NCBI RefSeq assembly: GCF_000150275.1
Contig: NW_002060943.1
Location: 8,831,070 to 8,895,069, forward strand
DNA: 64,000 bases
From: Trichoplax adhaerens
Lineage: Eukaryota > Animalia > Placozoa
Reading direction: 5' to 3'
A model generated the notes under the pieces. It ran no database searches. It was not told the DNA's origin and saw only the letters and a list, made by a program, of their open reading frames with translations. The translations under genes were made by a program, and so were the position numbers. Positions 36,709 through 64,000 of this stretch are shown here, one piece after another (the stretch's first letter is position 1; every line of letters begins with the position of its first letter).

Positions 36709-39700
36709 TTAAACATTCCTTTTTAGCCAGTCTTCTGCAACTCTTTCATAACTATTGATCCACGAAATTCTGTTCTTAATACTTTCAACAGACTGCTTAA
36801 CAGCGTTAGCACCTGTGCCTACATCAGGATTCTGTCTGAAGAAATCTTCAACCTAGAGAAAGGCATACACAACTTATTAATATACAGTATAGTCATCCAT
36901 GCAATCTTCAGGGTTGTTAAAATACTAGATTCACTCTTGCTTCAATCTTAAACTTGCCTGCTTCAATCTAAATTGTGATGCAAACCGTCCAGCAGTATTT
37001 CTGATTAAGCTACCAAAGGAAAAGAAACTGCCGCCATACCTTTAACAAAATGTACAAATTTTAGTCATAATTATAAACATTCCCTTGATTCGAATACTAG
37101 TAAACATCATATAATGTATAAGATTTTACGTTTTCCTAATATATGCCCAATTAGCACGAACGAAGTCCCATGCGAGAGGCCTGCCAACCAAGTTATTGGC
37201 AATGTAACCAATAACAACAGTAGAATCTTGGGAACGAACTTTAGCAGGATCAATGGACCACCTTAAGTACCTACAAACAGTTCAATAATTTTTTGAATGT
37301 TTAGTGTACGAGAATTAAGTTAATTAATCATTGCAATTGGTAAATCCATCATCAGAAGTCACAATGTACCTATTCAGAATCCACGGTTCCTTTGAATATG
37401 ACAAAGCATCTAATATAGTTCGTTTTTCGGAAGCGACATTCGTTTTATAGAAGTAATTATACAGGAAATCCCACTCTGCGATACCTCCATTAGCTATACC
37501 AAAACGGTATACAACCGCCTTCAAGTTCGGTTTTACGCTAATGTTGAATAGACGATTGATCTCACTATCCCCGCTTTGCAAAAAGTCACCTTGACTATGC
37601 AAGTATTCTGTATTTCCAGGTAAAATTAAATATCAACATTAACTTACGCATTATTTGTGGGGTCCGCCATAAAGCGACGGAAAAGCAAAGTTGCATTATC
37701 TAAACATGGCTTGTATCCAAATCCACAACCAATAGTTAAGGCCGACATACGCAATAATCTGATTAAATTTGATGGCTTATATCAATTATTGAAATTATGG
37801 TAATTTTATAATTTTAAGGTAGTAATTAGTATGTTCAGTTTTTAAAGCTTACTATTAATACATAATTATAGTAAAAAGTTAAAAATACTCACTTCTGAGT
37901 ATGACTCCCTTTGTCTTCAAAGCCAATCGTGTCCAATAAAGGCTTTAATTGCTTCAAGTAATATTGCTAAATAATAGGGTATATAAATAAAAGCTCATAA
38001 TAAGCTTATCACATTCATAATGTGAGATTATTTTATTATAGTTGTATAATTAAATATATGCGTCTAAGTATACATATCTGTCATTTACACTAACCGAAAA
38101 GTAACCGTAGGATGAACGATATGATATGATGGATCCAATAGCGCCAAGTACAGAGTTTGCAGTCCTCCAAGGAACATAGCTTCTTTCTTTCGTAAGATAC
38201 TTTGTTGTGCCAAATGCGATGTCGAGTACTTGGAGACTTCAAGGGTTCATTATAATTATCGATCAGTCCCTTATTACCTTGCAAGATTAAAAGCGTCATC
38301 AAGTAGATTGGAGAAATCTCTTTTTGATAATGCCTGTCACGCATACGGAAAGCAACGATCAGTATTTCATGAATATTTCAATACGTTATAAGCACATATG
38401 TCAAACACTATAAAATCAATCAACATTTTTTAAATGCACGCCATCATTATTGGAAAAACTTACCGGTTGTGTTTTCTGCATTTCCTGGATGAGGAGATTC
38501 CAATTACTTACTGGATAGTTAACTCGGTAATAGCCATAAGCATCTTTGTTGGCCTTCAGCCAAGTACCAGCTGGCCAAGCTATATTGAGAGCTATTTAGG
38601 AATTTAAAATTACATAATTACCAAACTTGTTGTAAAGTACAAAATACTCACACACAACATTAGATTTTAGATCGCTACAGTACTTGCAAAATACTTTTAA
38701 TCTATCTAACTATTTATAATCCACATATGCATGAACGTAGCTTACTGGAACTCATGTTAACCATTGCACTTCGAATTGTGTTCGGCGAATTTCCAAGAAT
38801 GTATTTAAGCGGGATATTCCACTTGTATCTATTAATTTAAAGCAATTAGCCAAGTCTAGCTTTCTGATAAGCTTACGCGGATCAAATTTTATTCATCTTT
38901 AATAAATGTAATTAGAGATACTACTAATAATAAATAAATATTATCATACCCATAGGGTGACCTGAATTTTGAGGTTGCTGGATCAACCTCGGGATTTTTA
39001 TTATTGGGATCCAACAAGAAACGTTTTTGTGAGAGTCGAGCTTGAGAACCTGTATTCGTGATAGTAACGACAGGAAATCCCATTTGCAGTGTCCAAGTAT
39101 CCATAACATCAGTAACATTTATCCTGTAAGAAATGGCCTTAAATGTTGCCATAATAATTCGATCAATGATGTGCTACGGGCAATTAACTACAGAACTTTA
39201 TGATAGTGCTTGTAAATCATTAATATACATATCCGATTAAATTTTACCTCCGATAAAGTTTGCCAAAGATCTCGAGTTACAGCATTCCGATATTCGAATT
39301 TTTTTAAGTATCTCTACATTTAAGAAAAGTAAACGTACGATAAAGAGATAATCTAAAAACTTTTAAGCCATCAATGTGCAATCAGTTTTAGAATATATGT
39401 CATACCGAAATGCCATTCTTGAAATCCAAATTACCCATCATATCTCTCATCATTCTAATGATCGATGCACCCTACATTATAATTAAAAGATTACTTACTA
39501 ACTTCTATTACAGTACCAACGTTTCAAAAAAATTAAAATATCCACAATTCAAAAATAGGTTTCAAAGAGAACAGACCTTCGCGTAAGAAATTGTGTCGAA
39601 AACTTCATTAATTTCGTCGGGATGATAAACAGTAACTTGGACAGGATGTGAAGTTACAAATGCATCCAAAGAGAAGGCGCGCTGTACGTCGATAGGTACA

Positions 39701-42700
39701 AATTGATCGAGCTATTCAAACAAAGAGCACAACAATTGTAAATTTTTAGCAATATAAAACTATAGGGAAATCACGTATTATCTATCCACTGTGGTGATCA
39801 TCATTCTCTAATTATTGGGGAAATTTAAAATTATGTATTACCATTTCCCATGTAGGTTGATAATGATCAGTGCCGAGATATTCCATGAAACTAGCAAAGC
39901 CTTCGTTAAGCCAAAGATCATCCCACCACTTCATAGTGACTAAATTACCAAACCACTACATGTTCAAATAGAAATTGAATAACTTAGTTCACAACAAGAG
40001 AGTAACGTAGGAGCTCATATCAATAATTTTTATTAACCATATGAGCCAATTCATGAGCCACTACATAAGCAACACGTTGCTGATTGTTAGCTGCAGAGAC
40101 ATTTGGATCATATAATAAAGCAGTTTCGCGATAGAGAATTAAACCCCAATTTTCCATGGCCCCAGCAGCAAAGTCAGGAACTGCTACCATGTCTATTAGT
40201 TATTAAGGTGGCGATAGGTATCAAGCGATTAGCAAAGCAAGAATAATGAAATGTATCAAACAGCAAACTAATTACCGCATTATCAAGCATTACCTTGTTT
40301 CGGCAATGGGAAAGGAATACCGAAAAAATCTTCGAAGTAATCAGTTATATTAACACCACCAATTAAAGCGAAATTGCCCTGATTGATAGTATCGGTAGTT
40401 GCCCAAACCCTTATCTAGATCCAATTTTAGTAAAATTTAGCTCCGCTGAGAAATTTTTAATTAATTTTAAATTGTATAAACAGGCAACATGAAACATAAA
40501 GCTGTTTACTATTTATGTTAACATACCGGTACTCTGTTTTTGGTCATCATTTCGATGTAAGTAAAATCGGCTAACACAAATGCAAGTAAGTACGAACTCA
40601 TCCTAACACTGGCTGTAATAAATTGAAATATCGATCGTTAAGTACAGTTTCTATTTTAACAATAATAAAACAACGTATGCAAAGACTGAAATTTAATTAC
40701 CAGGCTACATCAATGGTCAATGTATCAAGGTGACAATACAACCTGCAAAGTCTTTCTTTGTACTGTACTACGCTAGATATGAAGTATCGTTCACTAAACT
40801 TACTGTTGTAGTCATATCTTCTAAAACCAGGGCGATTAGGTATTGTAACATTTCTTTGAATTGGCATATTCCATAGAACGCTCGTATAATTTGATTGAGT
40901 AATGATTGTTGCTGTAAAATTGGCCTTCAATTCAGGCTCATCAAAGAGAGGTATAATCTTACGTGCGTCAGTTGGTTGACATTGGCTAGCTGCGATATTT
41001 CTAAATTGGAAAAAATAACATTGCATAAAATTTTAGAAATGCAACAAATTTACTTCACAATTGTTAGGATTTACAGCAACACATTGACGTAACGATTGCT
41101 TCCCCCTCAATTTTTTTTTGAATTCCGTCATTTCGATACTCGATTAACAAATTTAAAGTAACCTATCGTGCCGTTCGCATTCGCAACCCTACCCATCAAA
41201 TACGACATAAGTAATTTCCCCTGCTTTAAAATAAACTCCATATCTAAAAATGAAGAGCCGCTTGTGCTACAATAATGATCACAACATTTGTTTTGGCACA
41301 TGGCACTACGACTGGTGTTGACAACGCTAAACCGTAGTACAGTACAGTATAGTGAATTATTTACAGTACAGTACTTTGCGCGATTGTAATTTCGAAACTG
41401 GCCAATCAAATTCAGCTTCCAATTTACGTCACAGAGAGGCTGATTTGATAGATTGTTATTCCGTCGAGGACACGTTTCCTGTGGTCATGTAACCAGCATT
41501 CGGTGCGCACTTTTTAGAGCTCCAGTAGTAGGAAAAGGATTACAGCACGGTACTGTACACTGAGTGTACAGTACGGGCCTCATTTTAGAGCTCCAGTAGT
41601 ACAGTACAGTACTGTACAATCATAGACTACTACAGTACAGTACTATATGTACAAAAAACACTGTAGACTGTAGTCCATGGTACTGTACTGTACAGTACAG
41701 TACAGTACTGTAAAAAAGACTTCTCCGATAGGGCAATACGGTACAGTGGAAAACTCTCTTTAAAATGAGAGTCTGGTGAATCAGCCGNNNNNNNNNNNNN
41801 NNNNNNNNNNNNNNNNNNNNNNNNNNNNNNNNNNNNNCTGAGACATGATACGTCTGTGTCCAGTCTGTGACTGATTTAGTTGGACACTTACAGCACAGCA
41901 TGTTGAACGTCATTGTCGAAAGCGAATATGCGTAAGTAAATAATTACCTTGTCGCATAAGCACACAACGTTGTTGTAATTAGGTGAACAGTTTCTGTACA
42001 ATGCTTACGATGTGCAATTTACTTTTACTTACATTACACGGCCATCCAATTTTGTGTAAGTACTTTTATACAAGCCGTTCAACGCAGTAGATAATGCTGC
42101 CCTAAAATTAAATCGGACGTAATAGATTCCAGGATTAAGCGGGCTAGCCAGCACAATGTAGTAATAATCATTTAGCGCAAAAGCATTATGTTCGGATATC
42201 GTTAACGGGTTGCCAAAATTACGTGTAGACGAAACCACTGGGGAACCTACTAATGTCATTTGCTTCATATGAACAATAATGATATTCGTTTGTGAAGTAA
42301 CGGAGATTTCGATATCATTTTGGCCAGTAAACTGCAAGCCAATCATATCTACATCCAAAGAAAACCAGTACTGAATTGGAACAATATTTTTGGGAAGCCG
42401 AATGTTATTGACCGCCGGATATCTCGATGTCGGTTTAGGTGCGGTAGGTTTGACTGTAGCAACAGTTCGAGTTGTGGTAGAACCTGAACTTTGAGTCATG
42501 CCAGGTCTTGTGGTCATCGATGGCCGCGTTGTAGCCATAGTTGCCTGGGTACCGCCAGATCCTTGTGCACTTCCTCTAGGAACAACACCAGCCATAATGC
42601 CAACCAATACGATCAAACTGATAGCAACAGCAACTGCAATGATTAGATGACACTTGCTACAGTAGTAACCATTTGGTTTCTTTTCTCGCACTTCAAAATC

Positions 42701-43475: not shown

Positions 43476-44919
43476 AGATCAAGATAAGGTAAATACACGA
43501 CAGTAAAACGGTATCATGATGACCGTACCACGAAATTGTTACTGACTATCAGTAAGTTTTTGCTCCCNTATTTATGTACTGNNNNNNNNNNNNNNNNNNN
43601 NNNNNNNNNNNNNNNNNNNNNNNNNNNNNNNTATTGCATGATCATTAATTATGTGACAAGTTTGAACCACATCATCTACTTCTTTAGTCTGGCATCTGTA
43701 GATCCATAGGCTCAGCGAAGTGGTAGACAAGAGTTAGGAGATAGTTGTACAGCCTTTGTTGAAAGCGCGTAAGGCTTATGTAACTCCACAACAATCGTAC
43801 AGTCAGGTATGCGATACGCGGTTATAATACAGACGCGCGATACAGGTTTATACCAAATAATCCAATGGTAACAACATTAAGCCATGCATACATTACTGTA
43901 CAGGGATGTGCAATTGTGCATAGTATGATCTACAGCATCCATAAGATCTCTTTATCCGCAACGCTGCGTGATTGATTGTTTTCCAGATTCATGTCTGTGT
44001 CATGTACATTAGTACAGTACAGTGGAATGACCAGAAAAATGATAAGCCTCCATGCTTTTTTGCACTGAAAAGTGGTACTGCTGTACTCGTCTTGTACACT
44101 GCACAGAGATCGCGAAAGTGCCTCACTTCTGAGTAACCGATATCGGACGAGTTAGCGCTCTAGGTTTTTTTCGTTTATCTGTATGGCTTACATCATCAAG
44201 TTACGGCAAAGGTGACGTCCACTGTACTGTACTCTAACTGTACATATATATAGGTTAGATTTGTATGATATACAGAAACAACATACAAGCCTGAGCTGAT
44301 ATGCATTTTTCATGGTATTTTTCAGATACATTCACTCACTTTTCTACTACATGGTATCAGTTCCGCTAATACTGCTGCAGTACTGACAAAAGTTAAATTA
44401 AAAGTAAATTAAAATAATAATAATCGCATATTTGAATAAAGAAGAATAATAAAGATATCAGTTTTGAGGCTAATACTTGATTCGAATCTCTGATAGTGAT
44501 ACTGTACTTTCGATCAATCAATGATTTCTTATTGTTAATTGCGATACTGATAGAGTACAGTACTGTACAATCAGGGACTATTAAACGAACGAGATGGGGC
44601 AGGAAACGGTTGTTCGGTATGTTCGCTATACTAATAAATCAATAATGTGGAGGCTGATTATTCAATTGGTCATTTCAATTGTATCGCATATCTGTAAACG
44701 GTACACTATACTGTATGCGATTGGCGTCAAAAATTAGCTGCTATTATCCTACTACCTTGCTGTAAGTTGGTTTTATGCAGTATGGTATACAGTTTCAATG
44801 TTTCATCGGTAGCATATAGTACAACGACCGAAAAAATGATAAGCCCTCCAAATTAGTTTACTTTACGCTATGGTCGTTTCCTGTTCCGTTTCTTTCTTTT
44901 TCTTTCTTTAGTCATTCGG

Positions 44920-45390: not shown

Positions 45391-46387
45391 TTATATCTTC
45401 GTTATACTTGTCCAAACAAATTTACCATATTTTAACGATATTAACGAAGATCTAAAACGATGTTCGGCGCAGAATATCTCTAGCTAAATATGTCAGGTGC
45501 ACGCCCGTGCACTCCGAAAATCTTGGTTAATGACTTTGTTAACACTTAAATTAACTAATCAATTATTCACAGAATCGCAGCCTAAAAAAATCTGGTTGAA
45601 CTATCGACGATAAGTTCTTGTAACTCTACTACTGCTTCTATTGTTATATTGTCAAGTGGTGGTTAGTTTCTTATCATAAAATATTGCCCAACATTGTCAG
45701 TAAAAGAAAAAACAAATTAGTTTTAAATTAAATTTATATTGATAATAACAATGTACCCAGATAAATAGGCCTGACCAATGACAGTATTATCAAAACAATG
45801 GTTGCTATTGTTGCTTCCGTCTATTCGAACTTTCCAATTCTAATTGCCTTCGGGCAAATATGGTTAAATGAATTCGACGGCAGAATACATTGATAGACTG
45901 ACAATGATACAATGCTGGACTTTGCAATGAGTATATGGCGTCCGAAAATAAAGGATACAATCAATGCAAACTCAAATAAGCTTAACAGTGAAAAGCTACT
46001 TCTTTGTTCATTTAATATACTGTACTGTATATATAATGGCGTTCATCAACGACGACGGCTTTGCTCTTATTATATATTATTTATCCAGCAATAATTACAA
46101 TACTTTTGATCGTCCCCTACTTCAAGAAGATTAGCCACCTGAATATTACTTCAATATCACAACATTTGCATCCTTCTTCCTTTCTATCTATTTGATAGGG
46201 TTAACGATTCAGGAAATTATGTTGTAACTATTACTATCCAGGCTAATAATAATATACGCTGGTAAAGTGGAAAGCAAATCCTATACAGTATATTAGGACA
46301 ATCTTGGACATTTTTTTCCATCCGTGGATGGGAAACTAATGATATTGATTCTTCCAGAAATAGTCATCGCAGAACGAAAGACTGAAG

Positions 46388-49300
46388 ATGATTGAGAAAG
46401 ATCGACAACAATCAGAGAAAACTGACATTAGCAAGGAGGACAAAATTATTATTATCAAGCGGTTGCCTTGCAGCAATACTCGATGGATTTTAGCGATAAC
46501 AATCGTAGTCCTTTTAATTGCTATAATTGGCTTGGTTGTCGGACTAATACCGAGGTCCAGTTCTCAATCTCAAGTTGGTACACAAATTGTTACAACAGTT
46601 TCAAGTATTAAATCCACCATACAAACACAATCATCACCGTCTAAAATTACGTTTCCTACAACATTACCAATTAACACCAGAAAACCTACCGATGACTACA
46701 ATACAATTCCATCTACTCCCGACCGTGTTAGCACTCATGCTCCCATTACAAATCCAATTCCAACTTCCAAGTATCCTGCTATGAACAATCCCCGTTTACC
46801 GAAACAAATTATACCTGTTCAGTATTGGTTTCAACTCGAGATTAACGTTAAAAATTTAAACTTTTCCGGTTATAACATTATCGAATTAAACGTTACATCA
46901 CCCACGAAATTAATAATTGTTCATGCTAAGCAGCTAACAATGACTGCAGTTCCTCAAGTATCTAATACTCGTGTCGCGACGGCTAATACAATCTATTATC
47001 CCGTCAAAGAACACGGCTACTACTTTCCCAATCAATATTATTATGTGGCATTGAAAGATTCTCTGAATGTTGGCATTTACTATATTAAATATCAATTTCA
47101 AGCACCTTTAAGTCGTGATTTTCGGGGATTATACGCGTATCATTACACAAGACAATCTGATCAACTTAAAATGTAAGTATGCCTACTAAGTTTTTTCCTA
47201 GCTAAGTTTATGAACCGTACTAGCAGTATTTAACATCCCCATTAATCAGAAATTTTAGACTTTTATGAGTTTTGTAATCAAGCGCCACAATTGTTTTAAA
47301 ATATTTGCACTAAAATATTCACTAAACATCTAAAATTTCAACCACCCAACCGCTTATACATTAGTTTCGTGTTGCTATGCGTTAGAATCAGTCGAAAAAA
47401 ATCTGAAATCTAATAGGTCAATTGATACAGTTAAGAAAACCGTATCTGACATTGGGTATCATAAGGGTATGAAAGATTAGCCTTGAATGCATACGCGCAT
47501 TTAATATGTATTTAATATGCATATATTCTGTAAACAATGTCTTAACTACAATTCAGATTGAAATCCTTAATCAAATAAACAATAGATTGCCTCATTAACT
47601 TTTGTTAATCTGATAATTTAACGCCTAAATCGGTCATATCATTAATGATTTTACGTAATTTAATGGCTTAATGGAGGCCTTCTGCAATAGATTCTGATAA
47701 AATAATAAAACTGAATATACGTACGTATACCCGTAAATACATTTAGCTTCTCAACTTTGTTATAACTTACTTTTTTTCATTTCTACTTTCCATAAATCAT
47801 TTTTGTAATACGTTCTATTTCTGTGCGATTTTTAGTCTTCCTATTGATATTTATGTCCTCTGCCAATGTCAAACACCTTCCAATTAAGCTATTATGACCT
47901 TAATAATATGTATGCCTTCACTAATGATGTTTATTCTAGATGGGCAGTAGCAAGTCAATCTCAACCTAATTATGCCCGAAGAATAATTCCTTGCTTTGAT
48001 GAACCATCCTTTCCGGCTGTCTTCGTTGCGAGTGTAATCGTATCGATGGACTATAGTGCAATATCAAATACTGAAATCCTAGATATACAGCCTTACAGCG
48101 TGAACAAGATTCGCATTAGATTTGATCGTAAGTCAATCGGCGTAAAGTTGTTAAAATTAACAATGTAACAATAATAATTATTACACTCAAATAGCGCCAT
48201 CAATCATGATAATATCCCCTTATTATATAGGGATTAAAGCTTCAGTAATTTTTTTTCTCGAAAATATTTAATCATAAGCGATGAAGATTATCCTAACATA
48301 ATTACGTTATAATATAAATCACAGTTGGATACCTTTATCACATATTCATCTTAGAATAAAAGCCAATTATAGTTTATCTATTCAATCTTGGCTACCATTA
48401 ACCTTGACCTTCCAATTTTGTATATGTTGTTTTGGACGAAGCTGTACTGAACAATATTAATGAATTATTTATTACATCAGCTACTCATCGTATGCCAAGT
48501 TACTTTCTAAGTATCATTGTTCATAATTTCCGCCGGATTCAACAAAAAACCAGGGCCGGATCCTCGGTATGTTACAATAAATTTTAGTTTTAATTATTAT
48601 GAAATAACTATGAAACTTATTATCATTATAATTACCATTCAAATCCTGTCCTCAGATTCGTATTTGGGCTAGAAGAGCAATCTACCAAGACGGGCAAAAT
48701 GCTTTGACTGCAGCCGTAAATATAACGAATTATTTCGAAAAAATACTAGCTATTAACTCTCCCTCAAATAAACAAGGTAAGAAAATAATACTGATTTTAA
48801 GAATTATTACTTTAGATAGATTGAAATAATTGGTTCTCAGGATTGTGCTGATAGAACTATGGATATGCAGATGTATTATGAATAGCTTGCGCTTTTACTT
48901 TTGAGTAACGCGTACACTTGTAAAAATAAATCAAACTGACGATACGTTGAACATTTCATTAGATCATGTGGCACTTCCTACATTTACTGCAGATACCACC
49001 GCAAATTGGGGAGTCCTAATTTATCGGGAGGATTTTTTACTTGATAACAATTCCTACTCTTCGTCAAAACAGCAGCAACGAATTGCAGTTACTGTTGCCT
49101 ATCAAATTGCGCAAATGGTAATATATATTACACCGAAAATAATTGTTTCAAACTGTGAAATTGACATTCGGCAATCTATTTTCATATTAGTTTCAGTTTC
49201 TTTGTTTGACATTTACAGATTATTTACAATATTCCTCTTAATTAATAAAAAAAATATTATGAGTGTAGCCACCTTACCAGACTAAAGAGTTTTAACGATG

Positions 49301-52300
49301 TTAAACTATATTTACAGTGGTTTGGAAGCTTACTAACAATTCGTAAATGGAACGATTTATGGCTTCCAGAATCACTCAGTTGCTTCTTCGAAATAGTTGG
49401 AGCAGCATATTACCAGCCTACATTCCAACTAGTAAGTATAGAAATCATAACCTACAATGTATGCTGTATTTCATAATTCTCACATAACATTACTTCAAAG
49501 CCATATCATGGAATCGATTATACTCAAAGAATATGTTTATTGTAACCTATGGTTTATCAAATGACGGTTTACAATAGCAGAAATACCGAATTAAAGTGTT
49601 AAACTTTATTTACAATATTTTGGTGGGATCTATCCCTTCGTATATCACAGCATACAATAAATTTGTTACTATAAATTATCTGATGATGTTGCTTTGGGAT
49701 CTAATTATGCTTAATCTTGCAGATGGGTCAATTCATTGTCGATCATGTTCAGTTAGCTCAGAGAACAGAAGGAGTGCTTAATTCTTACCCCTTAGTATCG
49801 GCAACGGAGCATTCCCTGACGTTTTCGGATCCTATTTATTGCCATAAGGTATCATATTTTTTAAGCAATTAAAATAAAGTTATTTCAGAACATAAACAAA
49901 TTTAATTAATTTAATTTAAATAGTTTGAACAATATCGTAAAAGTTTTGATTTAATATATCATGAAGAATGATACTATAATTTTTAGATTTACGTATAACT
50001 CTGCATTTTTTATTATTAGCTGTCTACTTATGTTAATCGTAATCATGTTTGTTATCAGGGAGCTGCACTATTTCGTATGTTGCAAAATTACATAGGCGAT
50101 ACCGATTACCTACTTGGAATTACGGTTGTTACATTATTCTATAGATCAAGTTTGATATAATCTCTTTAATTTTACAATTTATCATAAGCCAAATTATGCG
50201 ATCTTCTAGATCAACCATTCTAGTAAAGATTTGACAACTCATGTGACGTAAAGTAAATTAAGGTATGAATTTCTCATAGGATTACTTGAAGTATCACGCA
50301 TATCGATTCGCGAATGCTGCTTCCTTATTTAATGCATTGACTAAGGTGAGTAAATATATTGGTACGAGACATGAACGCTTGCGTATAGTCTCGATAACCG
50401 TTGTTGCGAACGCTTTACTATTAAAGTATATTAGATGTAGAAACCAATATAGGCTGTTCGGAGCTATTTATGACTCTCCTGAATTTAAGATTTCAGCTTA
50501 TCGATGCAATATAACTGTCGCTCATATTGAGATTAAGAATTACATAAAAATCTAGATTAATATACATTACAGTACCGTATTTCACACACTTTAGCTAGAA
50601 AACGATCAGTTAAGATAATGATGTGCATGTAAGTAGTACGGTAATATATACGAATTCCAGCATAGGCAAAACAGCTCAGTGATAAATAATCGTGCTGTAT
50701 TAATAGCACTAGTATGATGTTGCTATAATTTCATTATGTGTGGTTAAGTAACTAAACTGTCATTCCTGATTGAATAATGTTAAGGGTAAGGCTTATCTTA
50801 ATACATCTACGTCCAATTCCCTTAGGCAACTAAGCACCAAAAAAATGTAGCTAATTTCATGCACCCCTGGATAACTCAAAGAGGCTATCCCATAGTTATA
50901 GTCCAGCGAGATCCACAAAATATTGACGGCGCCATTTTAACTCAGCTTCCATTTACTTCGTCAGTTTGGTCTAAAAACAGGTATTTTCAAATTTAATCAG
51001 ATTATCCGTTTTCTGTAATCATGTTATATAATTGAATATAATTGAATACAAACATAACCAAATTTTAATACTTTAAATTAAGGCAGAGCTAAAGTCTACA
51101 TTTAAAGATAACTATTTCATTTATACTACATTCTTTCAATTGCTCACATTAAAGTATTTTAATATTGCATTTTAGTGATGGATGGCACATTCCCTTCACT
51201 TGGTATTATGGAAGCTCTCCCAATAATATCTATCAAAAAGTAATTAACAGGACCTCAGGTATCATGATCTAATTATTATATCAATCTACTTTTAATTAAA
51301 TATATACTGGCAATGTCCTATAGTCCAAGTACATCTATTTATAATATAGACTTTTATTATAGCTACTAAATAAAAATAAAATTTTAGTAGTATCACATAC
51401 AAGCATGGCTATTACCTAAAACCTTGATACGATTATAGCTTTTATAACACATTATCTGATTTTATTCCAGCAACTACTAAGATTTCTTGGCCCAGAAATA
51501 CATGGATTAAAGCAAATTTTAATCAGTATGGATACTATCGCGTAAATTATCCGCTATCAAATTGGCACGCTATTTCATCTGCTCTTCAGTCTAATCCTCA
51601 TGTAAGATAAAAAATCGAAGTTACATAACAAGTTACGATCTTGTTAAAATTCTATCGATCTATTTACGAAGTTAACTCTGATTTTTATAACAGCAAATGA
51701 CGAAATTAGATATCTCCAGTTTAATGGATGATGCTTTTGAGCTTGCCAGGTAAGATAATCTATTATTTCGCTAACCAAGAAGTTTAGTGAGTGCTATTAA
51801 TTACTTCTCTAGAAAATATTTACTGGACTGTTTAAATAGTCACATAGTATATTGTAAAGTATGGTCAGTAAATTAAACCAATATCAATCTTCCTAATTTT
51901 GATCAGATATAATTATTTCACTAAGAGAATAGCTAAGTTACAAATTATCACGTTATTTTTATTGGTAGATAAGATACGACTTGACTGATACTGATAAATG
52001 AGGTGTAAGAAAGTACAGCATAACGTTTCAGAATTAAAAATTAAACCATCTTTAAATATTTTTAGTTTGCGAAATTTAAGCTACTCAATTCCGCTTAATA
52101 TGACCAAATATTTAAAACAAGAAACTACTTATTTGCCTTGGAAAACAGCCAATGTACATATGATGAATATCATGCAAGCATTTCTACTTCGACCATCGTA
52201 CAATGCGTTTAAGGTAATTCTTCAATTAAAACGTGTTTCATATGCTAGTATCCTATTTAATATTTACGCCATTGGTATAGTTTAAAGTGTCATAACTAGT

Positions 52301-54528
52301 GCTTTCTCGTTAAGTCTTTAGCTGAGTTTTAAATGATCATCAGGACTTGATAGCTACCGTATACTATTGCACGTCTAAGAATCATTTATCATTGAATGTA
52401 CATTTTCTTTTTATTCTAGAACTATTATACGAAAATTTTAACACCCGTTATCACCGTGGTTGGTTATCAAGATACAGGACATCATAACCATAAGTAACTA
52501 GCTCGCTTAATTATTTAATATCTTGATTTTATTTTTAACTAACAATGACTCAGTTGGTCTTAACTGATAATAGTAATAGAAATATTTTTGCTATAATAAT
52601 GACATTTATGAATTCGGATGATAGATTACTCCGATCTCTCGTCGTTAATTCAGCCTGTTTACTTGGCAATCAATCCTGCATTAATTATGCTTTAACAATG
52701 TTCAGAAATTATATGAATAATCCTGCAAACACAGCGTAAGAGTTAATTTCTACGAGATACGACCTTTGCAGTAATGATTAAATTATTGCGCAATAGATAT
52801 TTATTTAGTGTATAGAGTTATTTCATGCCTCAAATAATCTTCTCTAGAATTCCAGCAAATCTGCGATCGGTGGTATTCCGTTATGGTATTCGATATGGTG
52901 GAGATGCAGAATGGAATTTTCTCTATAACCATTTCAAACATGCTTCAAATCTGAACGATAAAATTAGAATGATGCGTGCGCTATCATTTTCAACCCAGAA
53001 AGCTAATCTTCAAAGGTAAGAAGCGATTCTCCCCTATTGTTACTATATCAACAACTATTGTGATAAAATAAAACACCTGAAGATGTAAAGTACAGTAGAG
53101 AGACTTTATAGTTTTTGCATAGCTACTGTATATATTATTATCAATAAGTAATGTACAAACAAGAACTAGGGTGCTTTTCTGATATGTACATTTGTGACTT
53201 TTTACTAGATTCTGAGGGTAACGTTGAGACTAACATTTTTTTCCTAAATACTGCAATATTAAGATAAGACTGAATCTCAGAAGTATAGTGTATGGTTAAA
53301 TTACTGTAAGCTAATATTGCCGTGTGGATTATATCCAGTCTCTAAATTTACATTAATTAATTTTGGAGGGCTTTATACACTAATCATATAATTAAAAATT
53401 ACAAAAGCTTCAATTTATTTAATTAACACCCAATTAATATAAAATAGACGTTGTAAAATTGTTTATACACAGATTACGTAAATATATCAACTATATTTAC
53501 GGTATTTAAATAAATACTATTGCAATACCTTATTTCATGAATGGCTATCTTTTAGTTAACATGTACGGTAGTATTCAAAAATACAGAAAGTTTGACAGAG
53601 CAAACAAAATTGTACTAAACTGTAAAGTAACACGCTCGGAAAAAATTTACATTAATGTAATTAAAGGCGATTACAGTATGTCGAAGATATGACATAAGCT
53701 GAAGACGAGCGAAAATATTTTTACGCTAGCATTCAGTTCATTATATTACGGACGTAAATAGGCCTGTATGTAAAGAAATTTAAACTCATATATGGAGTAA
53801 ATCAGTTTAGCTGTAAGAAATTTAGGCTATTCGATATTATCGCTTAGCTATTTATCTATTATTAATAATATAATTTGATATGCGACAGTAATGCGTATAT
53901 ATTCGCACATTATTTTTATCTTAGGTACCTGAACGATTCTATCGCAGATACACTGAATCCATCATACACACTAACAATACTTGACTGGGTAGCTCAGCAA
54001 GATATTGGAAGGAGCATAGCTTGGAATTTCGTACGGGCTAATAAAAAATATTTTATGAACAGGTTAAACGGGAAAACAGTTCTCATATGATAATCTTTAC
54101 GTTGGAGGATATGCAGTAATTTTCGGTTATCGTTCTCATTAATAGTAATTGCTAAATGACAATCTTTTTTAGATTTGGTACCGTAAGGGTCCCAACAGCG
54201 TCTATTTCTAAGCACTTTAATACTCAATTTTTATTCAATCAGGTCGGTAATAAATGCTTTAGAAATGGAAAGCGAATCTTTTAATTTCATCACAACATAT
54301 CGATTTCTAATTGTAGTAGTACCATGTAGTCAAGTTGATGTAGTATTGATCTTGCACTCTTTCATATTGAAGGTACAACAATTTATGACAGCTAACCCCG
54401 ACAAAAAGGTTAATGAATTTCCACTTCCTAAGAAACAAACGATTCTTTTTAAGGTGCAAAAGAATATTGACTGGCTTCAGCACCACGAGACAACTTTGCA
54501 AAAGTGGTTCAATGACAACCTCAAATAG
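46388..54528 (+). CDS. Aminopeptidase N-like M1 family protein with degenerate active site (predicted pseudo-peptidase; paralogue 2)
   Basis: Same exon structure as paralogue 1 (TM, S/T/P stalk, RLPKQIIP, RRIIPCFDEP, GYYRVNY, C-terminal NIDWLQHHETTLQKWF*), and all exons I translated are open and phase-compatible. GAMEN is DTTAN (48992-49006), HELAH is YQIAQ (49100-49114), NEG is PES and SYAKG is YCHKG. Confidence 0.9.
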
Positions 54529-57500
54529 TTTAATTTTAAATTAACTTCAATTTTAAACATGGTATTATTTATTTATTCATTTAAGCACATAGAACAGTAA
54601 AGACTGATACTTATGCCAGAATTTGGCTTCAATAATATTTATTCTTACTCCTTATTCGATACTCCATTATTGAATGTAATATTTATCGTACTTCTATGAG
54701 TATTCTATTCCAAATAATATATTATTGTTTCTGTATGATTTATGCAATTCTTTCCAAATTTTAATAGCGCAAGTTACTGTGTAACAGCCACTTAGCATTA
54801 TAAATTCCAATATAAAATTTTGTTTTATTTTGTTTCAAGAGTATGTGTACTTATCGTACAGCACATTATGTGATTCATTGTGCTGCACATTACGTGATTC
54901 ATCCCTTCAATATTGCATTGTATAGTAAAATAACTACGTAAAATAATAATACCTCATACGACCAAGATTAATGCTGTACAGCAAATCTAAAGTTTGTATG
55001 CAATCGTTAAATATTATCTAATCAGCTTTTACAAAAATATATCAATATAGCCATTTACAGTTGCGTTGCTATACGATAAGTTTTGTGCATATTCTTTGCT
55101 CTTGTGCCTATGCTTGTATATATATACACATTAGTGTGTGCTGGTATGATAATATGAAAATGGATAAAATCTTAACTACGATTGATTGCCATTTATGTAT
55201 CTACATATTTATTGATCATTTATAATCCAAAATATTATGACTTAAGTGCTACAACCATTATCAAGTTGTTACAGTATCAAACAAGTTTGCAGTTATACCT
55301 TTATCAAATGTTACCAAATAAAGTATGTATCAGTTATTGCAGTAAATGCAATTGTAATAACGCTAAATTTTCGATGTCTCCCAAGCTTTAAGCTATATGC
55401 AACGTAACCCTATTTAATACTTGGGTAAATGAATACACTGATTCAATCTAGCAGTAAAATACTCAAGAAAAGATAATAATATCATAAACACGGGGAAAAA
55501 TAGAAATGATAAAAAGTTTAATGTGCATGCTATTGAATATTGCAAGAGCCAATAACAAAAAATATAAAATTGTTAATCGAATACACAAGTAAAATAGCCT
55601 GTAAAGTAGATTAAAATACTTGATTAGAGTATCGCTAGTATACATTGTAGTAAGACAGAGACTAGTGAAAGATAAGAGAGAAGGACGGAGCGCTCATCCC
55701 TCTCCATCAAGAAAGGAGTCTTGCAGTACAACTATTAAAATCAATTTCATTGGAATGGTGATCTGCTAATATTATTAGGCTAAAGGTCTTTTCTTATTAA
55801 TTATATCCTCAAAGAATCAATTAAGCCATTTCATTGTGATGAATATTCTCCTAAATACCTAACCAATTTAATACGGTATCTATTACACTGACATGTAAGG
55901 GCTCTATTATAGTGTCAATAAATTCGATCATTTAACTAATTGTCTTATAGTGCGCTGATATATGGTAAACGTCTTAATGATAATTATGGATTTCTAACAC
56001 TGCTAATAAAATTATAGTATCGTAAAGTATTCCTGATATAACGAGTAGGAAGTACGCGTACACGTATATTCAAGATTAATTTAGCTTGAATCATATGGGA
56101 TCACATTACAGACATCAATTAGTCGATATAATAGTACCATAGTGTGATTTAATTAAATTATTGATAACCTAATTACGTACACAAATCCATAAATATAAAC
56201 CCTAGTTATCCTAAATCTTATTCCAAGATCATATTATGAATGAGGTTACAAACTTTTTGTAATATGCACGTATTAAGTAGCAATTTCTACATACGAGCAT
56301 ACTGGCTTATATACTGCATTAATGTTTGTCTTTAAGTAGCTATAAATTATTTCATTATCACTATTATTTGTAGTAATGCAATAGTAAACTTGCTCTAAAA
56401 TGGATTTTGCTCTTCACTAGGCTAATTAAATGCTTCAAGAATACGATAATATAAATTGAATATCCATATAACCATTCACTATCATTCCTATTAATGTATG
56501 AATTCCTTAAGAATACTGACAAACAGAATGCTGTAATGTAACAAAATTCGCTGATGATTAATTTGTATTTGACTGCATATGTAAATAAAGAATTACTAAA
56601 ATTACTAAAATTACTCTACCGAAAGTATCTTTACAAGCTGTACAGTATAGTATAAGGTATTAATTCCAAAGTGATTCCAACATGACAGTTCCTGGCTTAA
56701 TCTTACGTTAAGTGTGATATTTCGGAAGGTTGAGAGTTCGGCATTAGTCGCAATAAAGCACAATTGAATAGTTAACCAAAGAGTAACCTTTATTGAGCTA
56801 GTGTAAGAGAACAATCGTGTAAGATTATCGTGCGAGTAAGGACGTGACTAGTCGAATAACTATAGTAGTGTAGAATGGGTAAAGCGTGCAAGCTTACCGT
56901 GTAACTACCAGAACTAACTAACGAGATAGACGAAAGAAGATAGCTTTTATAATGTTCCTTAGGAGCACAGCAGGAGGAAATTATTTATAGGCGCGAATGA
57001 TTCATGAAAATAGGTTACTTCTGTGTTAACGCTAATGCTACGGTATAAGTTAGCTAGAGTACAAGATATTTCCACTGAGTAAATTGTTAAATATAGATCA
57101 TACATATTTAGAATTGTGTTACGGTCTTAGAATTACGCTACAGTCTAGTGAAAACGAATACTTTTACTAAAAATAGACTATATCGTATTTAGAAGTAAAC
57201 ACTACATTAAGCGCCTTTATTTTATGAATTTATTGTGGTTAACAGCCGTTTATTGATCCTCAGCGGAATAATCGCTAACTGCTTATTAATGGATATTTTA
57301 GCGCTATCAGCCATTCCTACTTCGCTTTTTTCTAAAGCAATAATACTTCCTGGATACGACGACCAATAGTTTTGTACCTGTAATTGTTATTATTAAAGGA
57401 AATAGTTGATCACGAAATGACCGATTGTCAGTGTTCACCTCATTCTACTCGTAAATTGAGTTTGAAATCGTATGCTCTGCTTTGTATGCTAAATTGGGTA

Positions 57501-58977
57501 ATATATGTAATTTGCTTGTCACTACGAAAAAAGTTTATTTAAACATGAGAATAGGTTCAAATTGTGCTACATTGAAGCGATCAACACGCTTCGGGCAATC
57601 TAGTTACCAATGTATAAATCCTGCATTAACAAAACAGGAATCCCGTAGTAATCTTTATTTACACTCTTATAGGTCTAATTTAATCTTCTAGGAAAATATA
57701 GGATTTGTTTTTCTTCAGGTGTTGGCAATTGTTTTCTCTGCCAAAGTCATTTTGCTAAGTGAATTATTTAAAATTCGGCTTTGAAATGAGATCATTTTAC
57801 TCTAATCTCGGTCCAGTGATTAATAACGGCCGACTACTAGTTTTTATTTAACAATAGATCGAAAGGAATAACTGCTTTGAGAATTGCGCTCAATAAACTC
57901 TTAAACTAATGACCCTAAATTTTCACAAATAATAATGATCAAAGCAATGATTCGTAAGCTTTGTCTATAAAAATTGTAACAGTATCAGCATTGTAACATA
58001 GGATTTTCCTAGACTTGATTTATTTATTTACTAATAGGTGAAATTTTTTCGAGATTTGCTTGCCACCATCATCTCTGAGATCTATATTTCCTACTTTTAA
58101 ACTGTTGAGTACAGCGTGAGCTTCTGTGGAATACTTTTCGTTCGAAAGTATATTGTAAGTTAATTCGTAACTATTCTTCTGATTCTTTGTTTTGTTAAAA
58201 GTAAGATAACGGATACTCTAATATGATCGGCAACAATTAATAGATATTGTTTATGCCACTTAATAATTATTGCGAAAGAGAATACTAAGATATGAATCCT
58301 GTTCGAGGAATTGATACTCGAACTGTATTAATAATTGCGCGATAGTAGAGTGTTTTTAGTACAATTAGAACAATTTTGTTGGTGATGATGAGAAAATTCA
58401 TCGCTTTGGCAAATGACGACAAGATCAACTTACCGTTCGAGAACGTTAATTATACATTAATTAATAATCACTTGTATAAAGGACTACATTACGTTGGTAA
58501 GTGATTAGCATTACTATAGTCGGCGAAAACTTTAGATTGCAATGTTGTGGCTGTGAAACATATGACGACTATTTCAACAAAGACATATGCTGCATTTCAT
58601 TAACATTGTTTACATGGGTATCATTGCACATATCATTAATAATTTTAGAGAAAAATCTTGAGCACTATTGTCAACGACCATAATTGCAAGCTACAATGTG
58701 CAGAGTAATCCCATTATTCTAACTTAAGCGTTATTTTAATTGGCTACTTTTAATTTACTTTATACAACAATAACTTGGATCGTTATTGGAGGATAACTCT
58801 ATATTTGTAAATGATCCACTTCGCTTTGTATTTTTAAGCTTGGGTCGCTTAAAAATCTGTTTAGCGAGTCACGCGCTCGAAGTAGAAAAAGACCTGCTCA
58901 GAAGTAAAGCATTTAGCCTTGCGCTGACATCCGTACCAAACAGTCTATCAACGTTGACAAATTCTCGTTAGTCAAAA

Positions 58978-61900
58978 ATGGGGACGGAAAAAGCTGATCC
59001 TGATGTAGAATTTCGTGGTGAGAAGCAGGCAGTTTCTGGCTTCCACCTATCTAAATTGCAAGTCATATTAATAATTCTTCTATCGATTGGCGTAGTTGTA
59101 TTTACTGGAATTTTTGCTGGAGTTATCTTGCCTAGCATCAATGCTGCCCACAGTACAAGCACTCAGGCACCAACTACACAACCACCAGCAGGAACTAATA
59201 ATCCAACATCGACTTCGAATCAAGGTGGCTCGACTTCAACGCCACAGTCTGCCACTTCCAAGCCTTATGCTATTCCTTCACCTCAACCAACACAACCTAC
59301 ACCTACTTCTTCTTATGCCGCCGTTAACAAACCACGTTTGCCCACCGATATTGTACCTGTTCAATATTGGTTTACATTGGAAATTGATATGACCAATTTG
59401 AATTTTTCTGGTGACACTACCATCGAGGTTACTGTTAAAAAAGAGACAAATACAATTATTCTTCATGCATCTGGATTGACTATGACTCAAGATCCTCAGG
59501 TGACTAATAATCGAAACTATGATGGCTCTACCACTTACTACACGATTAGCACCAAGGGAACGTACGCACCCAATCAATATTACTACATGATGATGCAGAA
59601 CAATTTAACACCAGGAACATATTATTTACGATTCCGCCATACTGCTCCATTATCAACCCGCTTGGACGGATTATATAAATATCAGTATACTAGAGCGTCC
59701 ACCGGAGAAAAAATGTAAGTTTTTATACTGGACTGTCTACTGCAATCTCGTCTAAGGTTGCAGCACCTACAGTACTATGTATTTGTATAATATCGAGTTT
59801 GCAAAAACTTGTAAGCACTGCTTAAGTGGGATTCAGCCCAGCCCGATAGAGGTAGATTTTCTAGTCAATTACCAGAATGAGCAGTTGAAATTAAAATTGT
59901 TTGCCCTGTCAATTTCTGACATTGGACTATGGAAATAGCAACAAAAATGCTCCAGGGTTCGCTTTTATTTTTACTTTTTCCTACAGGTATTACAGAGTAC
60001 TGTACATGTACCGTAGGCTTGATAGTACTATACACTGTAAAGTACTGTGCATTGTACTACACCGTACCAGTCACCCACTGGGCGTCAGCGTTGGCAAGTC
60101 CGTAAACTATGACGATTGCCGCCATGGTTGAGTCGGTACGGCAGTTCTAGTTTGCCACTAGTCGGTATACTATTCCTACATCTATATCGAGTCCTAGTCT
60201 GCGAAAGAAAAATATTTCTAGGAGTACAGTATATTAATCTTATTATTATTATTATTATTAAAATGGTATATTGCCAGGGTATCAGCCATCAATGTTGAAA
60301 ATCAAATGGCAGCTTTAATATTACTGTATCGTAGAAGTTGTGAGAAATGGAATTATACTTTATATTTTGAGTCAATACATAACGTATAGTACTGTACCGT
60401 ATACTATTTAACCTGAAGTGGCTATGCAACACGCTTTACATTACTGTCCATGTCTTGCCCCAAAATAAGCAAACCACAGCATTTTTATGAATACAAATTG
60501 CAAACTCTGAACTAGGAAATGGCATAATTAAATGCTGCATTCCCAGTAAAATTTCCGATTGTGCTTGTTACTTTCCGCAAGCAGCATCTATAATAGTACA
60601 AATAGGCGTCAAACACTAAGCTATCATACATCCACACTATTCCATAGTCATCGAGTCTCAAATACGTGCTACTAAAGATCATTTATTGCGCATGAAAAAC
60701 AATTCAGTAAGCTAGAAATTTTCCGCAACGCAAGCTTAGGGAATCGATAGAACGACCGAACTATACTAAAGCTTTGCAGTGCCGTAGTTGTCAGGAAGCG
60801 CAGGGCAAGAAACAGTAAAATTATTTCGAATCCTTGTTTCAAAAAAGGAGTGAAAAATTTCCATTAATCGAGCAACTGAACGTTTCGTAAAATACGGCGA
60901 AAAACGCCCTTACTTCTGTCCAATTTGTCAAGCAGTATTCAAACAGCCAAGATAAGTACGGTTCAGGATGCGCACGCTACAGTACGTTACGTCGAGGTGT
61001 TTACAGAGAACCTGAAAATTATAGTTAGCATATTCAAAGTTTTTACACACGACGGTACAGTATACAGGGCTGTATCTGATTCTTTGTAAAAAAAACAGCT
61101 ACTGTAATCATCTGCCGTATGTACTAAGGTCAAATTGATGGCTTAAAATTAGAATAAATTAATAATTAATTAGTGAATAATTTTCACTGTGCCGCAATGT
61201 TGATTTTCGATGAAAACGGCTTTGACGCCATACTGAATTGTGGGATATAGTACCGCACTTGAGCAGATCAATTGTCATCAAACAAATCAATATAGCCCAT
61301 TACTGACTGACATTTAACTGCAGGCAACGCGACTCCAAATGCACTAATGCGATAATGAATACGCGCGCCATTGACGTATTGTAGCTTTAGTTTGCTCAAA
61401 AATTCATCATTGTACAGTACAGTGTATACAGTAGTGTAACATTTACTATACTAGTGCACACGATTGCAGCATGGACCGCAAATATTTGCTGCATCACGCC
61501 ATGCCGAAAAGGCGAAAGCGTAACCGTATTGCATAGCATACCGTCAATAAGAAATTATGATTTTCGTGCGATGTAGCATGGAGCAGAAGAGGGTCGAAAA
61601 TAAAACGTACACAGTATGCAATCCATGGATGCAATCAGTGTTTGAACAGTGTGCATTCTATGAGTTATACTGCATATTTTATCTGTGAAACAAAGTCCAA
61701 ACCAGCTCAATGCTAGTTTTTCCTTCTGATCATTACAAATAATAAAACAACTAACAAGAAATACTACGTGCTAGCACGTATATGTCTGAAATATTATTAG
61801 TCCTTCAAAGTTGATCGGTTAAATTACGATAGGGTTTATTCTTTTTTTTTTGATCGAGTATGCTTTCCAAGAAACCTTAAATTTGGCCAATTTAGGTGCC

Positions 61901-63670
61901 GTTGCCTAATTGAACGGATGGATAGTATACTGTAAGCTCCACATGTACACGAGGCTTGATGCTATAGTAGTTCGAAGGTGCACAATACTCAAACGGCTAA
62001 TTCTCACTTCAGTCGCTTGTTAGTGAGTTGCCAACCACCTTAAATTCTTGCGGTGATGATGATACCGCAAGGCACCTTTTGTCGCTTGCAAAATGTAAAT
62101 ATCTGGCATACGGTAGCGTATTTTCGCTATTGGACCTGAAGACAGATCAAAACAAAAATCTTATGTTTTGCATTCTAACAGGTCGTGCTCATAATATACC
62201 TTTACAGTGACTTTACGATTCATTTAAGGTTAATTATGAATACATTTATTGGCTATATCATCTGTCGTTTACTCGAGAATTAACAGCCATTTCTAGTTCG
62301 AACGCGCAATTTACTTCTAGATTTATGATCTTATGATGTCGATATCATTTTCTAATCATTAATTCAGATTAGAACACTCGTGTCAGCTAACGTCAAGCTG
62401 ACACCCCAGAGGCAAATCTTCATTTTCACCTACTGTAAATAAAGGATAGTACATTGCAAGCAAAATATTATTTAGCTTGAAAAATGAAATAAAAGCGTCT
62501 TAAACACATAGTATATTTTAATATCATGGTAAATGCCATAAATTACAATTAAAAATATTGCAATATGTTTTATAGATGAGCGTACTAAATTAAATTCCAA
62601 ATAAATTCTATTAAATTAGCAACATTGATTAGCCGGGTATAAATACTAAAATGGCTGAATTTCGGTTTTATTTAGATGGGGTGTTGGAAGCCAGTGTGAA
62701 TCATTCGATGCTCGCAGGATTATACCGTGTTTTGATGAACCAGCATTGAAAGCTAGATTTCAAACTACCCTTATCGTTCCTAGCAATTACACTTCCTCGT
62801 TAACTAATATGCTTTTAGTCGGTGAACAACCATTGCAAGGAAATAGAGTTCAATTAAGCCATGAAAGTAAGGAAATATTCAAACCGCCGGTTTTATTTGC
62901 TGATATATTTCAGCAATAGCGTTCGCAATACAGTACATTCCTTTAACTTATCGAATATGTTTATAATATTGCATTGAATTCTTAACAGTTAGTTATACGT
63001 AATGGTAGTTAGACTAATGGAAATATAGACAACGCCGAAATTCTATTTTATTCTAATCTCTAATTCTTTTATTTAAAACAATTTTAGACACTGTTGTTAT
63101 GTCATCTTATCTATTGGCATTCAGTATCACTGACTTTGATCGAGTTGAAAGAGATGTCGGAGGCATTTTGGTAAAATTGGATGCTAACAACATTACGTGA
63201 ATTATACATTAAATTTTAGATAGCGTATTCTTATTGCACGATGATAAACAATAAAGAGTCTCTAACTTCATTATTATAACTAAAGATTAATTAATCAACT
63301 ACAGTATAGGATCTGGGCCCGTAAAGCAATTAAAAATGACGGTAACTATGCACTTGAAGCTGCCATTAACATCACTACTTATTTTGAAAATTTGCTTGGC
63401 GTGAAATATCCGTTGCGTAAGCAAGGTAATGGTTATCAAATCGGGTTCATAATCCGGTATACTGTAGTGTAACGGGTGTTCAAAATATCTAACATTTAAC
63501 TTATTTTTTGATTAGATCATGTTTCTGTTCCTAAATTTGATTCGGGCGCTATGGAAAATTGGGGATTAATCTTATATAGAGAGGAATACTTGTCATATAG
63601 TCCATCTTATACCGATGCTAGAGAAAAAGAATTTATAGTGGCTATAATTGCTCACGAATTAGCTCACATG
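58978..63670 (+). CDS. Aminopeptidase N-like M1 zinc metallopeptidase, motifs intact (paralogue 3; 3' part beyond window)
   Basis: TM plus S/T/P stalk plus RLPTDIVP in exon 1 (58978-59714), then a ~2.96 kb intron. Following exons: [38 protein letters not shown]...[30 protein letters not shown]...AIIAHELAHM, ending at the donor after 63670. Confidence 0.92.
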
Positions 63671-64000
63671 GTAAGTGTCTAAATCTTACTTCCTTTTGAA
63701 TCCACAGTTCTTAGAAATGGTATCTAATGGAATTGCTATCGATGATTAATTTAACTTTAAATCCACTTCATTTGTTAATTAAAAATGTCTTTATAAGTTA
63801 TAATCAGTTTGGATAGCTACTAAATCGTTATGATATTCCACAATCGATAAGTAAGAGCTCGGGTAGTGAAAGTATCATGAACTATACTTACTCAAGTACC
63901 TAATACTAGAAAAGACCAGCTCTCGCAAATTTGTTTATTCTAGATGCAAACTATCGTATCTACAGTTATAATATCCAATATATTTATCTTTCTTAATAGT

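Follow-up and report, generated by a model that had tools for sequence, protein, structure and literature searches.

A predicted non-catalytic aminopeptidase N homologue held under purifying selection in the placozoan Trichoplax adhaerens

The window analysed here is a stretch of 64,000 nucleotides from Trichoplax adhaerens (contig NW_002060943.1, positions 8,831,070 to 8,895,069; G000:C1414:8831070-8895069), AT-rich with a G+C content of about 33%. At 46388-54528 on the plus strand it carries a gene for an M1 aminopeptidase N (APN)-like protein in which the catalytic residues have been replaced, and which is referred to below as the dead gene. With a probability of roughly 0.7, it encodes a functional type II membrane M1 homologue which is non-catalytic, arose as a placozoan-specific tandem duplicate, is under purifying selection and acts by binding at the cell surface.

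An active M1 aminopeptidase is recognised by a GXMEN motif with its amine-anchoring Glu, by HEXXH-X18-E with the general base, and by the transition-state Tyr; none of these was found in the dead gene. DTTAN (48992-49006) and YQIAQ (49100-49114) lie in one open frame, and alignment to PDB entries puts both exactly on the GAMEN and HELAH of solved aminopeptidase N chains. The W-L-P-E-S of exon 6 corresponds to the W-L-N-E-G of solved APNs, which leaves the third-ligand Glu as the sole zinc ligand. A PDB search with exon 7 alone gave no match, and the Tyr position was aligned against placozoan paralogues with exon 7 plus the first three residues of exon 8 as anchor. The end of exon 7 (49848), I-Y-C-H-K, together with the G opening exon 8, aligns with I-S/T-Y-x-K-G and places a Cys on the catalytic Tyr of three active placozoan proteins. 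The first-pass annotation had proposed the changes GAMEN to DTTAN, HELAH to YQIAQ, NEG to PES and Tyr to Cys, and the PDB and paralogue alignments place all of them where it had put them. In T. adhaerens the general base, two of the three zinc ligands, the amine-anchoring Glu and the transition-state Tyr are thus all lost and, judged from the predicted protein and from what is established about M1 enzymes, these losses exclude normal zinc aminopeptidase activity.

The gene model comprises 20 exons and 998 codons (2997 coding bases), with AG..GT at all introns, consistent phases and no in-frame stop, much as the earlier claim of an uninterrupted type II membrane M1 protein of some 20 exons had it. 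The exons are as follows, with L001 denoting a contig that carries an orthologue and is described further on.

46388-47172, plus strand: exon 1, with the start codon, a short cytoplasmic tail, the signal-anchor helix (about 46487-46543), the Ser/Thr/Pro stalk (about 46550-46807) and the start of the M1 N-terminal domain; orthologous to L001:900-1723
47940-48127, plus strand: exon 2, remainder of the M1 N-terminal domain with a conserved P-C-F-D-E-P (Pfam, chain model, L001)
48481-48566, plus strand: exon 3 (chain model, L001)
48656-48776, plus strand: exon 4 (chain model, L001)
48963-49117, plus strand: exon 5, with the former exopeptidase and HEXXH motifs, DTTAN and YQIAQ (Pfam, PDB alignment, L001)
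49318-49431, plus strand: exon 6, with the W-F-G-S helix, L-P-E-S (third zinc-ligand Glu kept, Asn lost) and a lineage-specific Cys at Glu+4 (PDB alignment, L001)
49723-49848, plus strand: exon 7, ending in I-Y-C-H-K, with Cys at the catalytic Tyr position (paralogue alignment, L001)
50059-50124, plus strand: exon 8, with a weak donor, GTTGTT (chain model, L001)
50280-50345, plus strand: exon 9 (chain model, L001)
50826-50980, plus strand: exon 10 (chain model, L001)
51176-51258, plus strand: exon 11 (chain model, L001)
51471-51601, plus strand: exon 12, 88% identical to L001 (chain model, L001)
51694-51749, plus strand: exon 13 (chain model, L001)
52066-52213, plus strand: exon 14, the last one within L001 (chain model, L001)
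52420-52493, plus strand: exon 15 (chain model)
52625-52735, plus strand: exon 16, ERAP1_C domain with a conserved Cys pair (Pfam, chain model)
52848-53015, plus strand: exon 17, ERAP1_C domain (Pfam, chain model)
53925-54062, plus strand: exon 18, ERAP1_C domain (Pfam, chain model)
54173-54242, plus strand: exon 19, with a weak donor (chain model)
54373-54528, plus strand: exon 20, including the stop codon (chain model, intron projection)

Exon by exon, Pfam returned Peptidase_M1_N (PF17900), Peptidase_M1 (PF01433) and ERAP1_C (PF11838) in the canonical order, which establishes the M1 homology. The whole-genome PF01433 scan matched the gene at 8880028-8880180 and 8880384-8880512, and its exons matched aminopeptidase N in the PDB with E-values of 5e-8 and 3e-9. 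Residues 34-52 form a 19-residue hydrophobic segment (mean Kyte-Doolittle value 3.2) followed on its C-terminal side by a stalk which is 48% Ser/Thr/Pro, and because of this pair of features a type II topology is predicted. With its anchor helix, stalk and 10 N-glycosylation sequons, and with a conserved Cys pair in the C-terminal domain, the product has the layout of a putative type II surface glycoprotein. An alternative, intact exon 5 within the locus was ruled out, no other GxMEN or HExxH being present in any frame of 46388-54528.

With the part of exon 1 that encodes the N-domain as query, phmmer run over the full library returned one close relative, P0001 (73% identity), whose coding sequence lies on three Logan assembly contigs. 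L001 is the longest of them (6454 bp) and carries the counterparts of exons 1-14; exons 2-14 are identical in length and exon 1 differs by in-frame indels in the stalk only. The equivalents of the splice sites are AG at all acceptors and GT at all donors, and there are no stops. Its motifs read DATSN, HQIAQ and LSES, with Cys at the Tyr position, so that L001 retains the first zinc-ligand His and has lost one of three zinc ligands. Since the orthologue lacks the same catalytic residues, the dead state is older than the split of the two lineages: by this comparison the changes of Glu to Gln and of the second His to Gln, the loss of the GAMEN Glu and the replacement of Tyr by Cys predate the split, and loss of the first His followed later, in the branch leading to T. 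adhaerens. At the other position that anchors the amine, in exon 2, one orthologue has Gln and the other His. Two Cys residues are common to both dead orthologues and absent from the active paralogues, one four residues after the retained Glu (exon 6) and the other at the Tyr position, with a His next to it (exon 7).

At the DNA level the exons are 70-82% identical between the window and L001, and most intron sequence could not be aligned. One-to-one orthologues of T. adhaerens and Hoilungia hongkongensis show a mean protein distance of 28.3%, with dN/dS (nonsynonymous divergence divided by synonymous divergence) below 0.5 in 97% of cases (PMC6067683). The protein distance between the dead gene and L001, 28.7%, matches that mean, and another placozoan genus is therefore a plausible source of L001. 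Contigs L023 and L024 were searched for 3' exons of the orthologue and contained none.

Within intron 1, a block at 47497-47665 (plus 47365-47393) matches L001:2066-2234 (plus 1974-2002) with 76% identity over 173 bases, its core at about 47540-47665 being more conserved and the rest of the intron unalignable. The gaps in this non-coding block are not multiples of three, and Rfam has nothing that matches it; it may represent a regulatory element or a small RNA carried in the intron. Rfam over 46000-55000 gave a sub-threshold mir-248 match only, which was taken as chance.

The comparison with L001 covers 753 codons with 71.3% amino-acid identity. The proportion of nonsynonymous differences (pN) is 0.165 and that of synonymous differences (pS) 0.643 (Fisher p 2e-91), a pN/pS of 0.26 (bootstrap 0.22-0.30); the Jukes-Cantor-corrected dN/dS is about 0.13, an approximate value since dS is saturated. 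At a neutral rate about 167 stop-creating hits would be expected between the two sequences, against none seen. Exons 5-7, with the former catalytic core, are no less constrained than the remainder (pN/pS of 0.185). For the domain encoded by exon 1, dN is 0.164 in the dead pair and 0.169 between the active neighbour TRIADDRAFT_63531 and its orthologue on L023, a contig which may be from another placozoan than L001. By these measures, purifying selection acts on the dead gene as strongly as on its active neighbour. The first-pass annotation had argued from the intact frame alone that the gene is selected, and had proposed dN/dS and disabling mutations in orthologues as checks. L001 supports that argument through its conserved exon lengths and splice sites, its lack of stops, the same losses and a pN far below pS; dN/dS is not near 1, and exons 1-14 of L001 carry no disabling mutation.

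These data bear on a reading in which the locus is a decaying or silent pseudogene, or its exon chain an artefact of model building. In its favour, no transcript or annotated protein was found in database searches, the donors of exons 8, 18 and 19 are weak (that of exon 8, GTTGTT, occupies the same position in L001), and the stop codon has no canonical poly(A) signal within 570 bases. Against it stand frames free of stops in two lineages despite saturated synonymous divergence, conserved exon lengths and splice sites, a pN far below pS, and the lack of any other exon with intact motifs in the locus. Neither stops, frameshifts and lost splice sites nor a dN/dS near 1, the marks of a pseudogene, were found, and on these sequence grounds the pseudogene reading appears largely refuted; the chance that it, or an artefactual chain, is correct is very slight.

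Several points do weigh against the reading of a functional, non-catalytic surface protein. The orthologues number one, spanning exons 1-14 only; dN/dS is approximate and the origin of L023 uncertain, as said above; and word searches with exon 1 or with full-length P0150 found no database protein or transcript for the dead gene. The search with exon 1 gave only exon 1 of L001 (P0001) and the orthologue of the neighbour (P0002), with no T. adhaerens model or transcript; that with P0150 gave, in its best 120 matches, the TRIADDRAFT models of the neighbours and none for the dead gene. The open frame of exon 17 returned no candidates in a word search, and the exon 1 open reading frame was absent from the collection on exact look-up. 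The neighbours have TRIADDRAFT models whereas these searches brought up none for the dead gene, which may be missing from the public T. adhaerens gene set or wrongly modelled there. Nothing on placozoan aminopeptidase N was found in the literature searched.

The places in which the protein has changed were sought among positions invariant in seven active placozoan sequences, scored where both dead orthologues differ. In exons 5-8, 14 of 40 such positions are changed, against 6 of 71 elsewhere (p 0.0008), and most of the changes gave both species an identical new residue. The dead gene diverged with a focus on its catalytic core and was frozen afterwards. For a maximum-likelihood tree, 130 columns of the N-domain within exon 1 were used. 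All placozoan sequences form one clade (100/99) with cnidarian, sponge and bilaterian proteins outside it, and the two dead sequences are monophyletic (100/100); they share a long stem (0.44) and are sister to a group of active paralogues each with its own one-to-one orthologue. Since the dead pair nests with active paralogues in a placozoan-only clade, the tree indicates that the gene comes from a placozoan-specific duplication older than the split of the two lineages, and that it most likely became inactive independently of the inactive M1 proteins of other animals.

On the favoured reading of a non-catalytic surface protein, tandem duplication within an aminopeptidase N expansion particular to placozoans would have given rise to the dead gene, which would have undergone rapid change near the active site and then come under purifying selection. 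Its ectodomain would keep the four-domain M1 aminopeptidase fold, with the usual catalytic zinc binding and peptide hydrolysis gone. The protein would act at the cell surface by binding and not by catalysis, as a scaffold, co-receptor or adhesion partner in the manner of Caenorhabditis elegans MNP-1, probably through its remodelled, still constrained pocket or through other surfaces of the ectodomain. The protein is unlikely to capture free peptide N-termini in the canonical way, since neither species retains the GAMEN Glu and the other amine-anchor position varies between Gln and His; simple trapping of peptide N-termini seems accordingly less likely than protein-protein binding or binding in a remodelled pocket.

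T. adhaerens has no neurons and relies on peptide signalling. A more specific proposal, which we consider unlikely, is that the two lineage-specific Cys, the adjoining His and the retained Glu would mark a cleft rebuilt as a new ligand site, making the protein a receptor or sensor at the surface, with a metal or secreted regulatory peptides as its ligand. If true, this would mean that a digestive ectopeptidase was turned into a surface receptor or sensor. The same residues allow for a pocket which still does chemistry, by another metal site or by a thiol-based activity drawing on the retained Glu, the two new Cys and the adjacent His. The conservation of both Cys in the two orthologues and not in active paralogues, the strong constraint on exons 5-7, and the first His kept in L001 would fit such an activity. 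However, both species have Gln in place of the general-base Glu and of the second His, and T. adhaerens has Tyr in place of the first His, which leaves the retained Glu as the only shared ligand of the old site; the two Cys may merely form a disulfide or be buried, and no M1 member is known to have such rebuilt metal-site or thiol chemistry. Retained chemistry of this kind is therefore most improbable.

The active paralogues on either side of the dead gene raise another alternative, in which the product is a non-catalytic subunit pairing with active APN paralogues of the cluster and tuning their activity, stability or localisation. In vertebrates, aminopeptidase N dimerises by means of its C-terminal domain, the dead gene lies between two active paralogues in a tandem cluster, and the comparable C-terminal-domain exons are the best conserved against L001 (exons 12-13, 88-89% identity). 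All active M1 proteins, however, conserve that stretch too (none of its 11 invariant positions is changed), and its conservation is therefore uninformative on pairing; we regard a subunit role as rather unlikely.

The family to which the favoured reading assigns the gene has a described member. C. elegans MNP-1 (matrix non-peptidase homologue 1) is an M1 homologue without three of the four zinc-site residues and is presumed inactive (PMC10368266, PMC4418752). Cell migration depends on MNP-1, which also interacts with a Ror receptor kinase and acts as a regulator of the defence against a pore-forming toxin (PMC10368266, PMC4418752). Both are membrane-associated M1 members with most zinc-site residues gone, and MNP-1, though presumed inactive, is biologically required. 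They differ in length (781 residues in MNP-1, 998 in the dead gene), and the partners of MNP-1 (CAM-1/Ror, the integrin and Eph pathways) have no demonstrated counterpart for the placozoan gene. In the tree the dead gene falls beside active paralogues inside a clade of placozoan sequences only, which argues for an independent loss. Pseudoenzymes are common. The marks of an MNP-1-like non-peptidase, namely M1 homology, lost catalytic and zinc residues and maintenance by selection, were all found in the dead gene, which is a further M1 non-peptidase homologue, the principle being already known from MNP-1.

The M1 genes of T. adhaerens were counted by a Pfam PF01433 scan of the whole genome (105.6 Mb in 1414 contigs). 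About 22 M1 loci were found, and at least eight of them stand in a tandem array between 8.87 and 8.98 Mb on the scaffold of the dead gene, in line with the APN cluster proposed earlier. The neighbours within the window are:

36712-42499, minus strand: upstream active paralogue TRIADDRAFT_20166, GAMEN and HELAH kept (40163/40055)
58978-64000, plus strand: 5' part of the downstream active paralogue TRIADDRAFT_63531, GAMEN and HELAH kept (63545/63653); the gene runs off the window

Database models match these genes with 97-100% identity over most exons of TRIADDRAFT_20166 and 99.6% over exon 1 of TRIADDRAFT_63531. The motifs of both flanking paralogues are intact, as first read. The introns of the dead gene, said from the start to be placed as in its neighbours, coincide with those of TRIADDRAFT_20166 at the eight projectable junctions (the ends of exons 1, 3, 4, 5, 6, 11, 13 and 16). 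The dead gene resembles the two neighbours (active APN/glutamyl aminopeptidase, MEROPS M1) in domain order, type II layout with stalk and intron positions, with 40-47% identity exon by exon; unlike active APNs, it has lost GXMEN, HEXXH and the catalytic Tyr and keeps the third-ligand Glu alone. Some 435 bases 5' of the TRIADDRAFT_63531 start (58543-58978) align with L023:3225-3661 within a single 1197-base blastn match of 73%, with an identity equal to that in the coding exon, which suggests a conserved 5' untranslated region or promoter. Runs of N occur in the window at 12114-12163, 41788-41837 (intron 1 of TRIADDRAFT_20166), 43568 and 43582-43631, and none falls in the dead gene.

The motif exons were translated at 19 further M1 loci, the HExxH of one (L021) lying outside the stretch read. 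Wherever readable, xxMEN is kept, and so is HExxH with one exception on contig C1409 (about 133.6 kb); among the loci with readable motifs, the dead gene is the only comprehensively dead M1 copy in the genome. The exception, at G000:C1409 about 131520-135700 (L017, L025), is an M1 paralogue in another tandem cluster with T-G-M-E-N and N-E-I-A-H, the first zinc-ligand His having become Asn. Like the dead gene it is a tandem-cluster copy with a changed zinc ligand; unlike it, this paralogue still has the Tyr, the second His and both Glu residues (general base and third ligand), and would be at most weakened. One possibility is a weakened enzyme, another an early step along the path that the dead gene took. 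Another locus, G000:C1412:3602842-3603495 (L020), has its whole M1 catalytic domain in a single open frame of 717 residues with canonical GAMEN, HELAHQWFGN and Tyr; intron-poor against the 20-exon genes of the cluster, it resembles cytosolic puromycin-sensitive-type aminopeptidases.

The dead gene offers a clean case of an M1 non-peptidase in an early-branching animal, with dead and active copies side by side, shared introns, and a dead state which would have been reached before a genus-level split and kept under normal purifying selection. If the proposed role is correct, it would be a tractable example of a digestive ectopeptidase recruited to a non-catalytic role at the cell surface.

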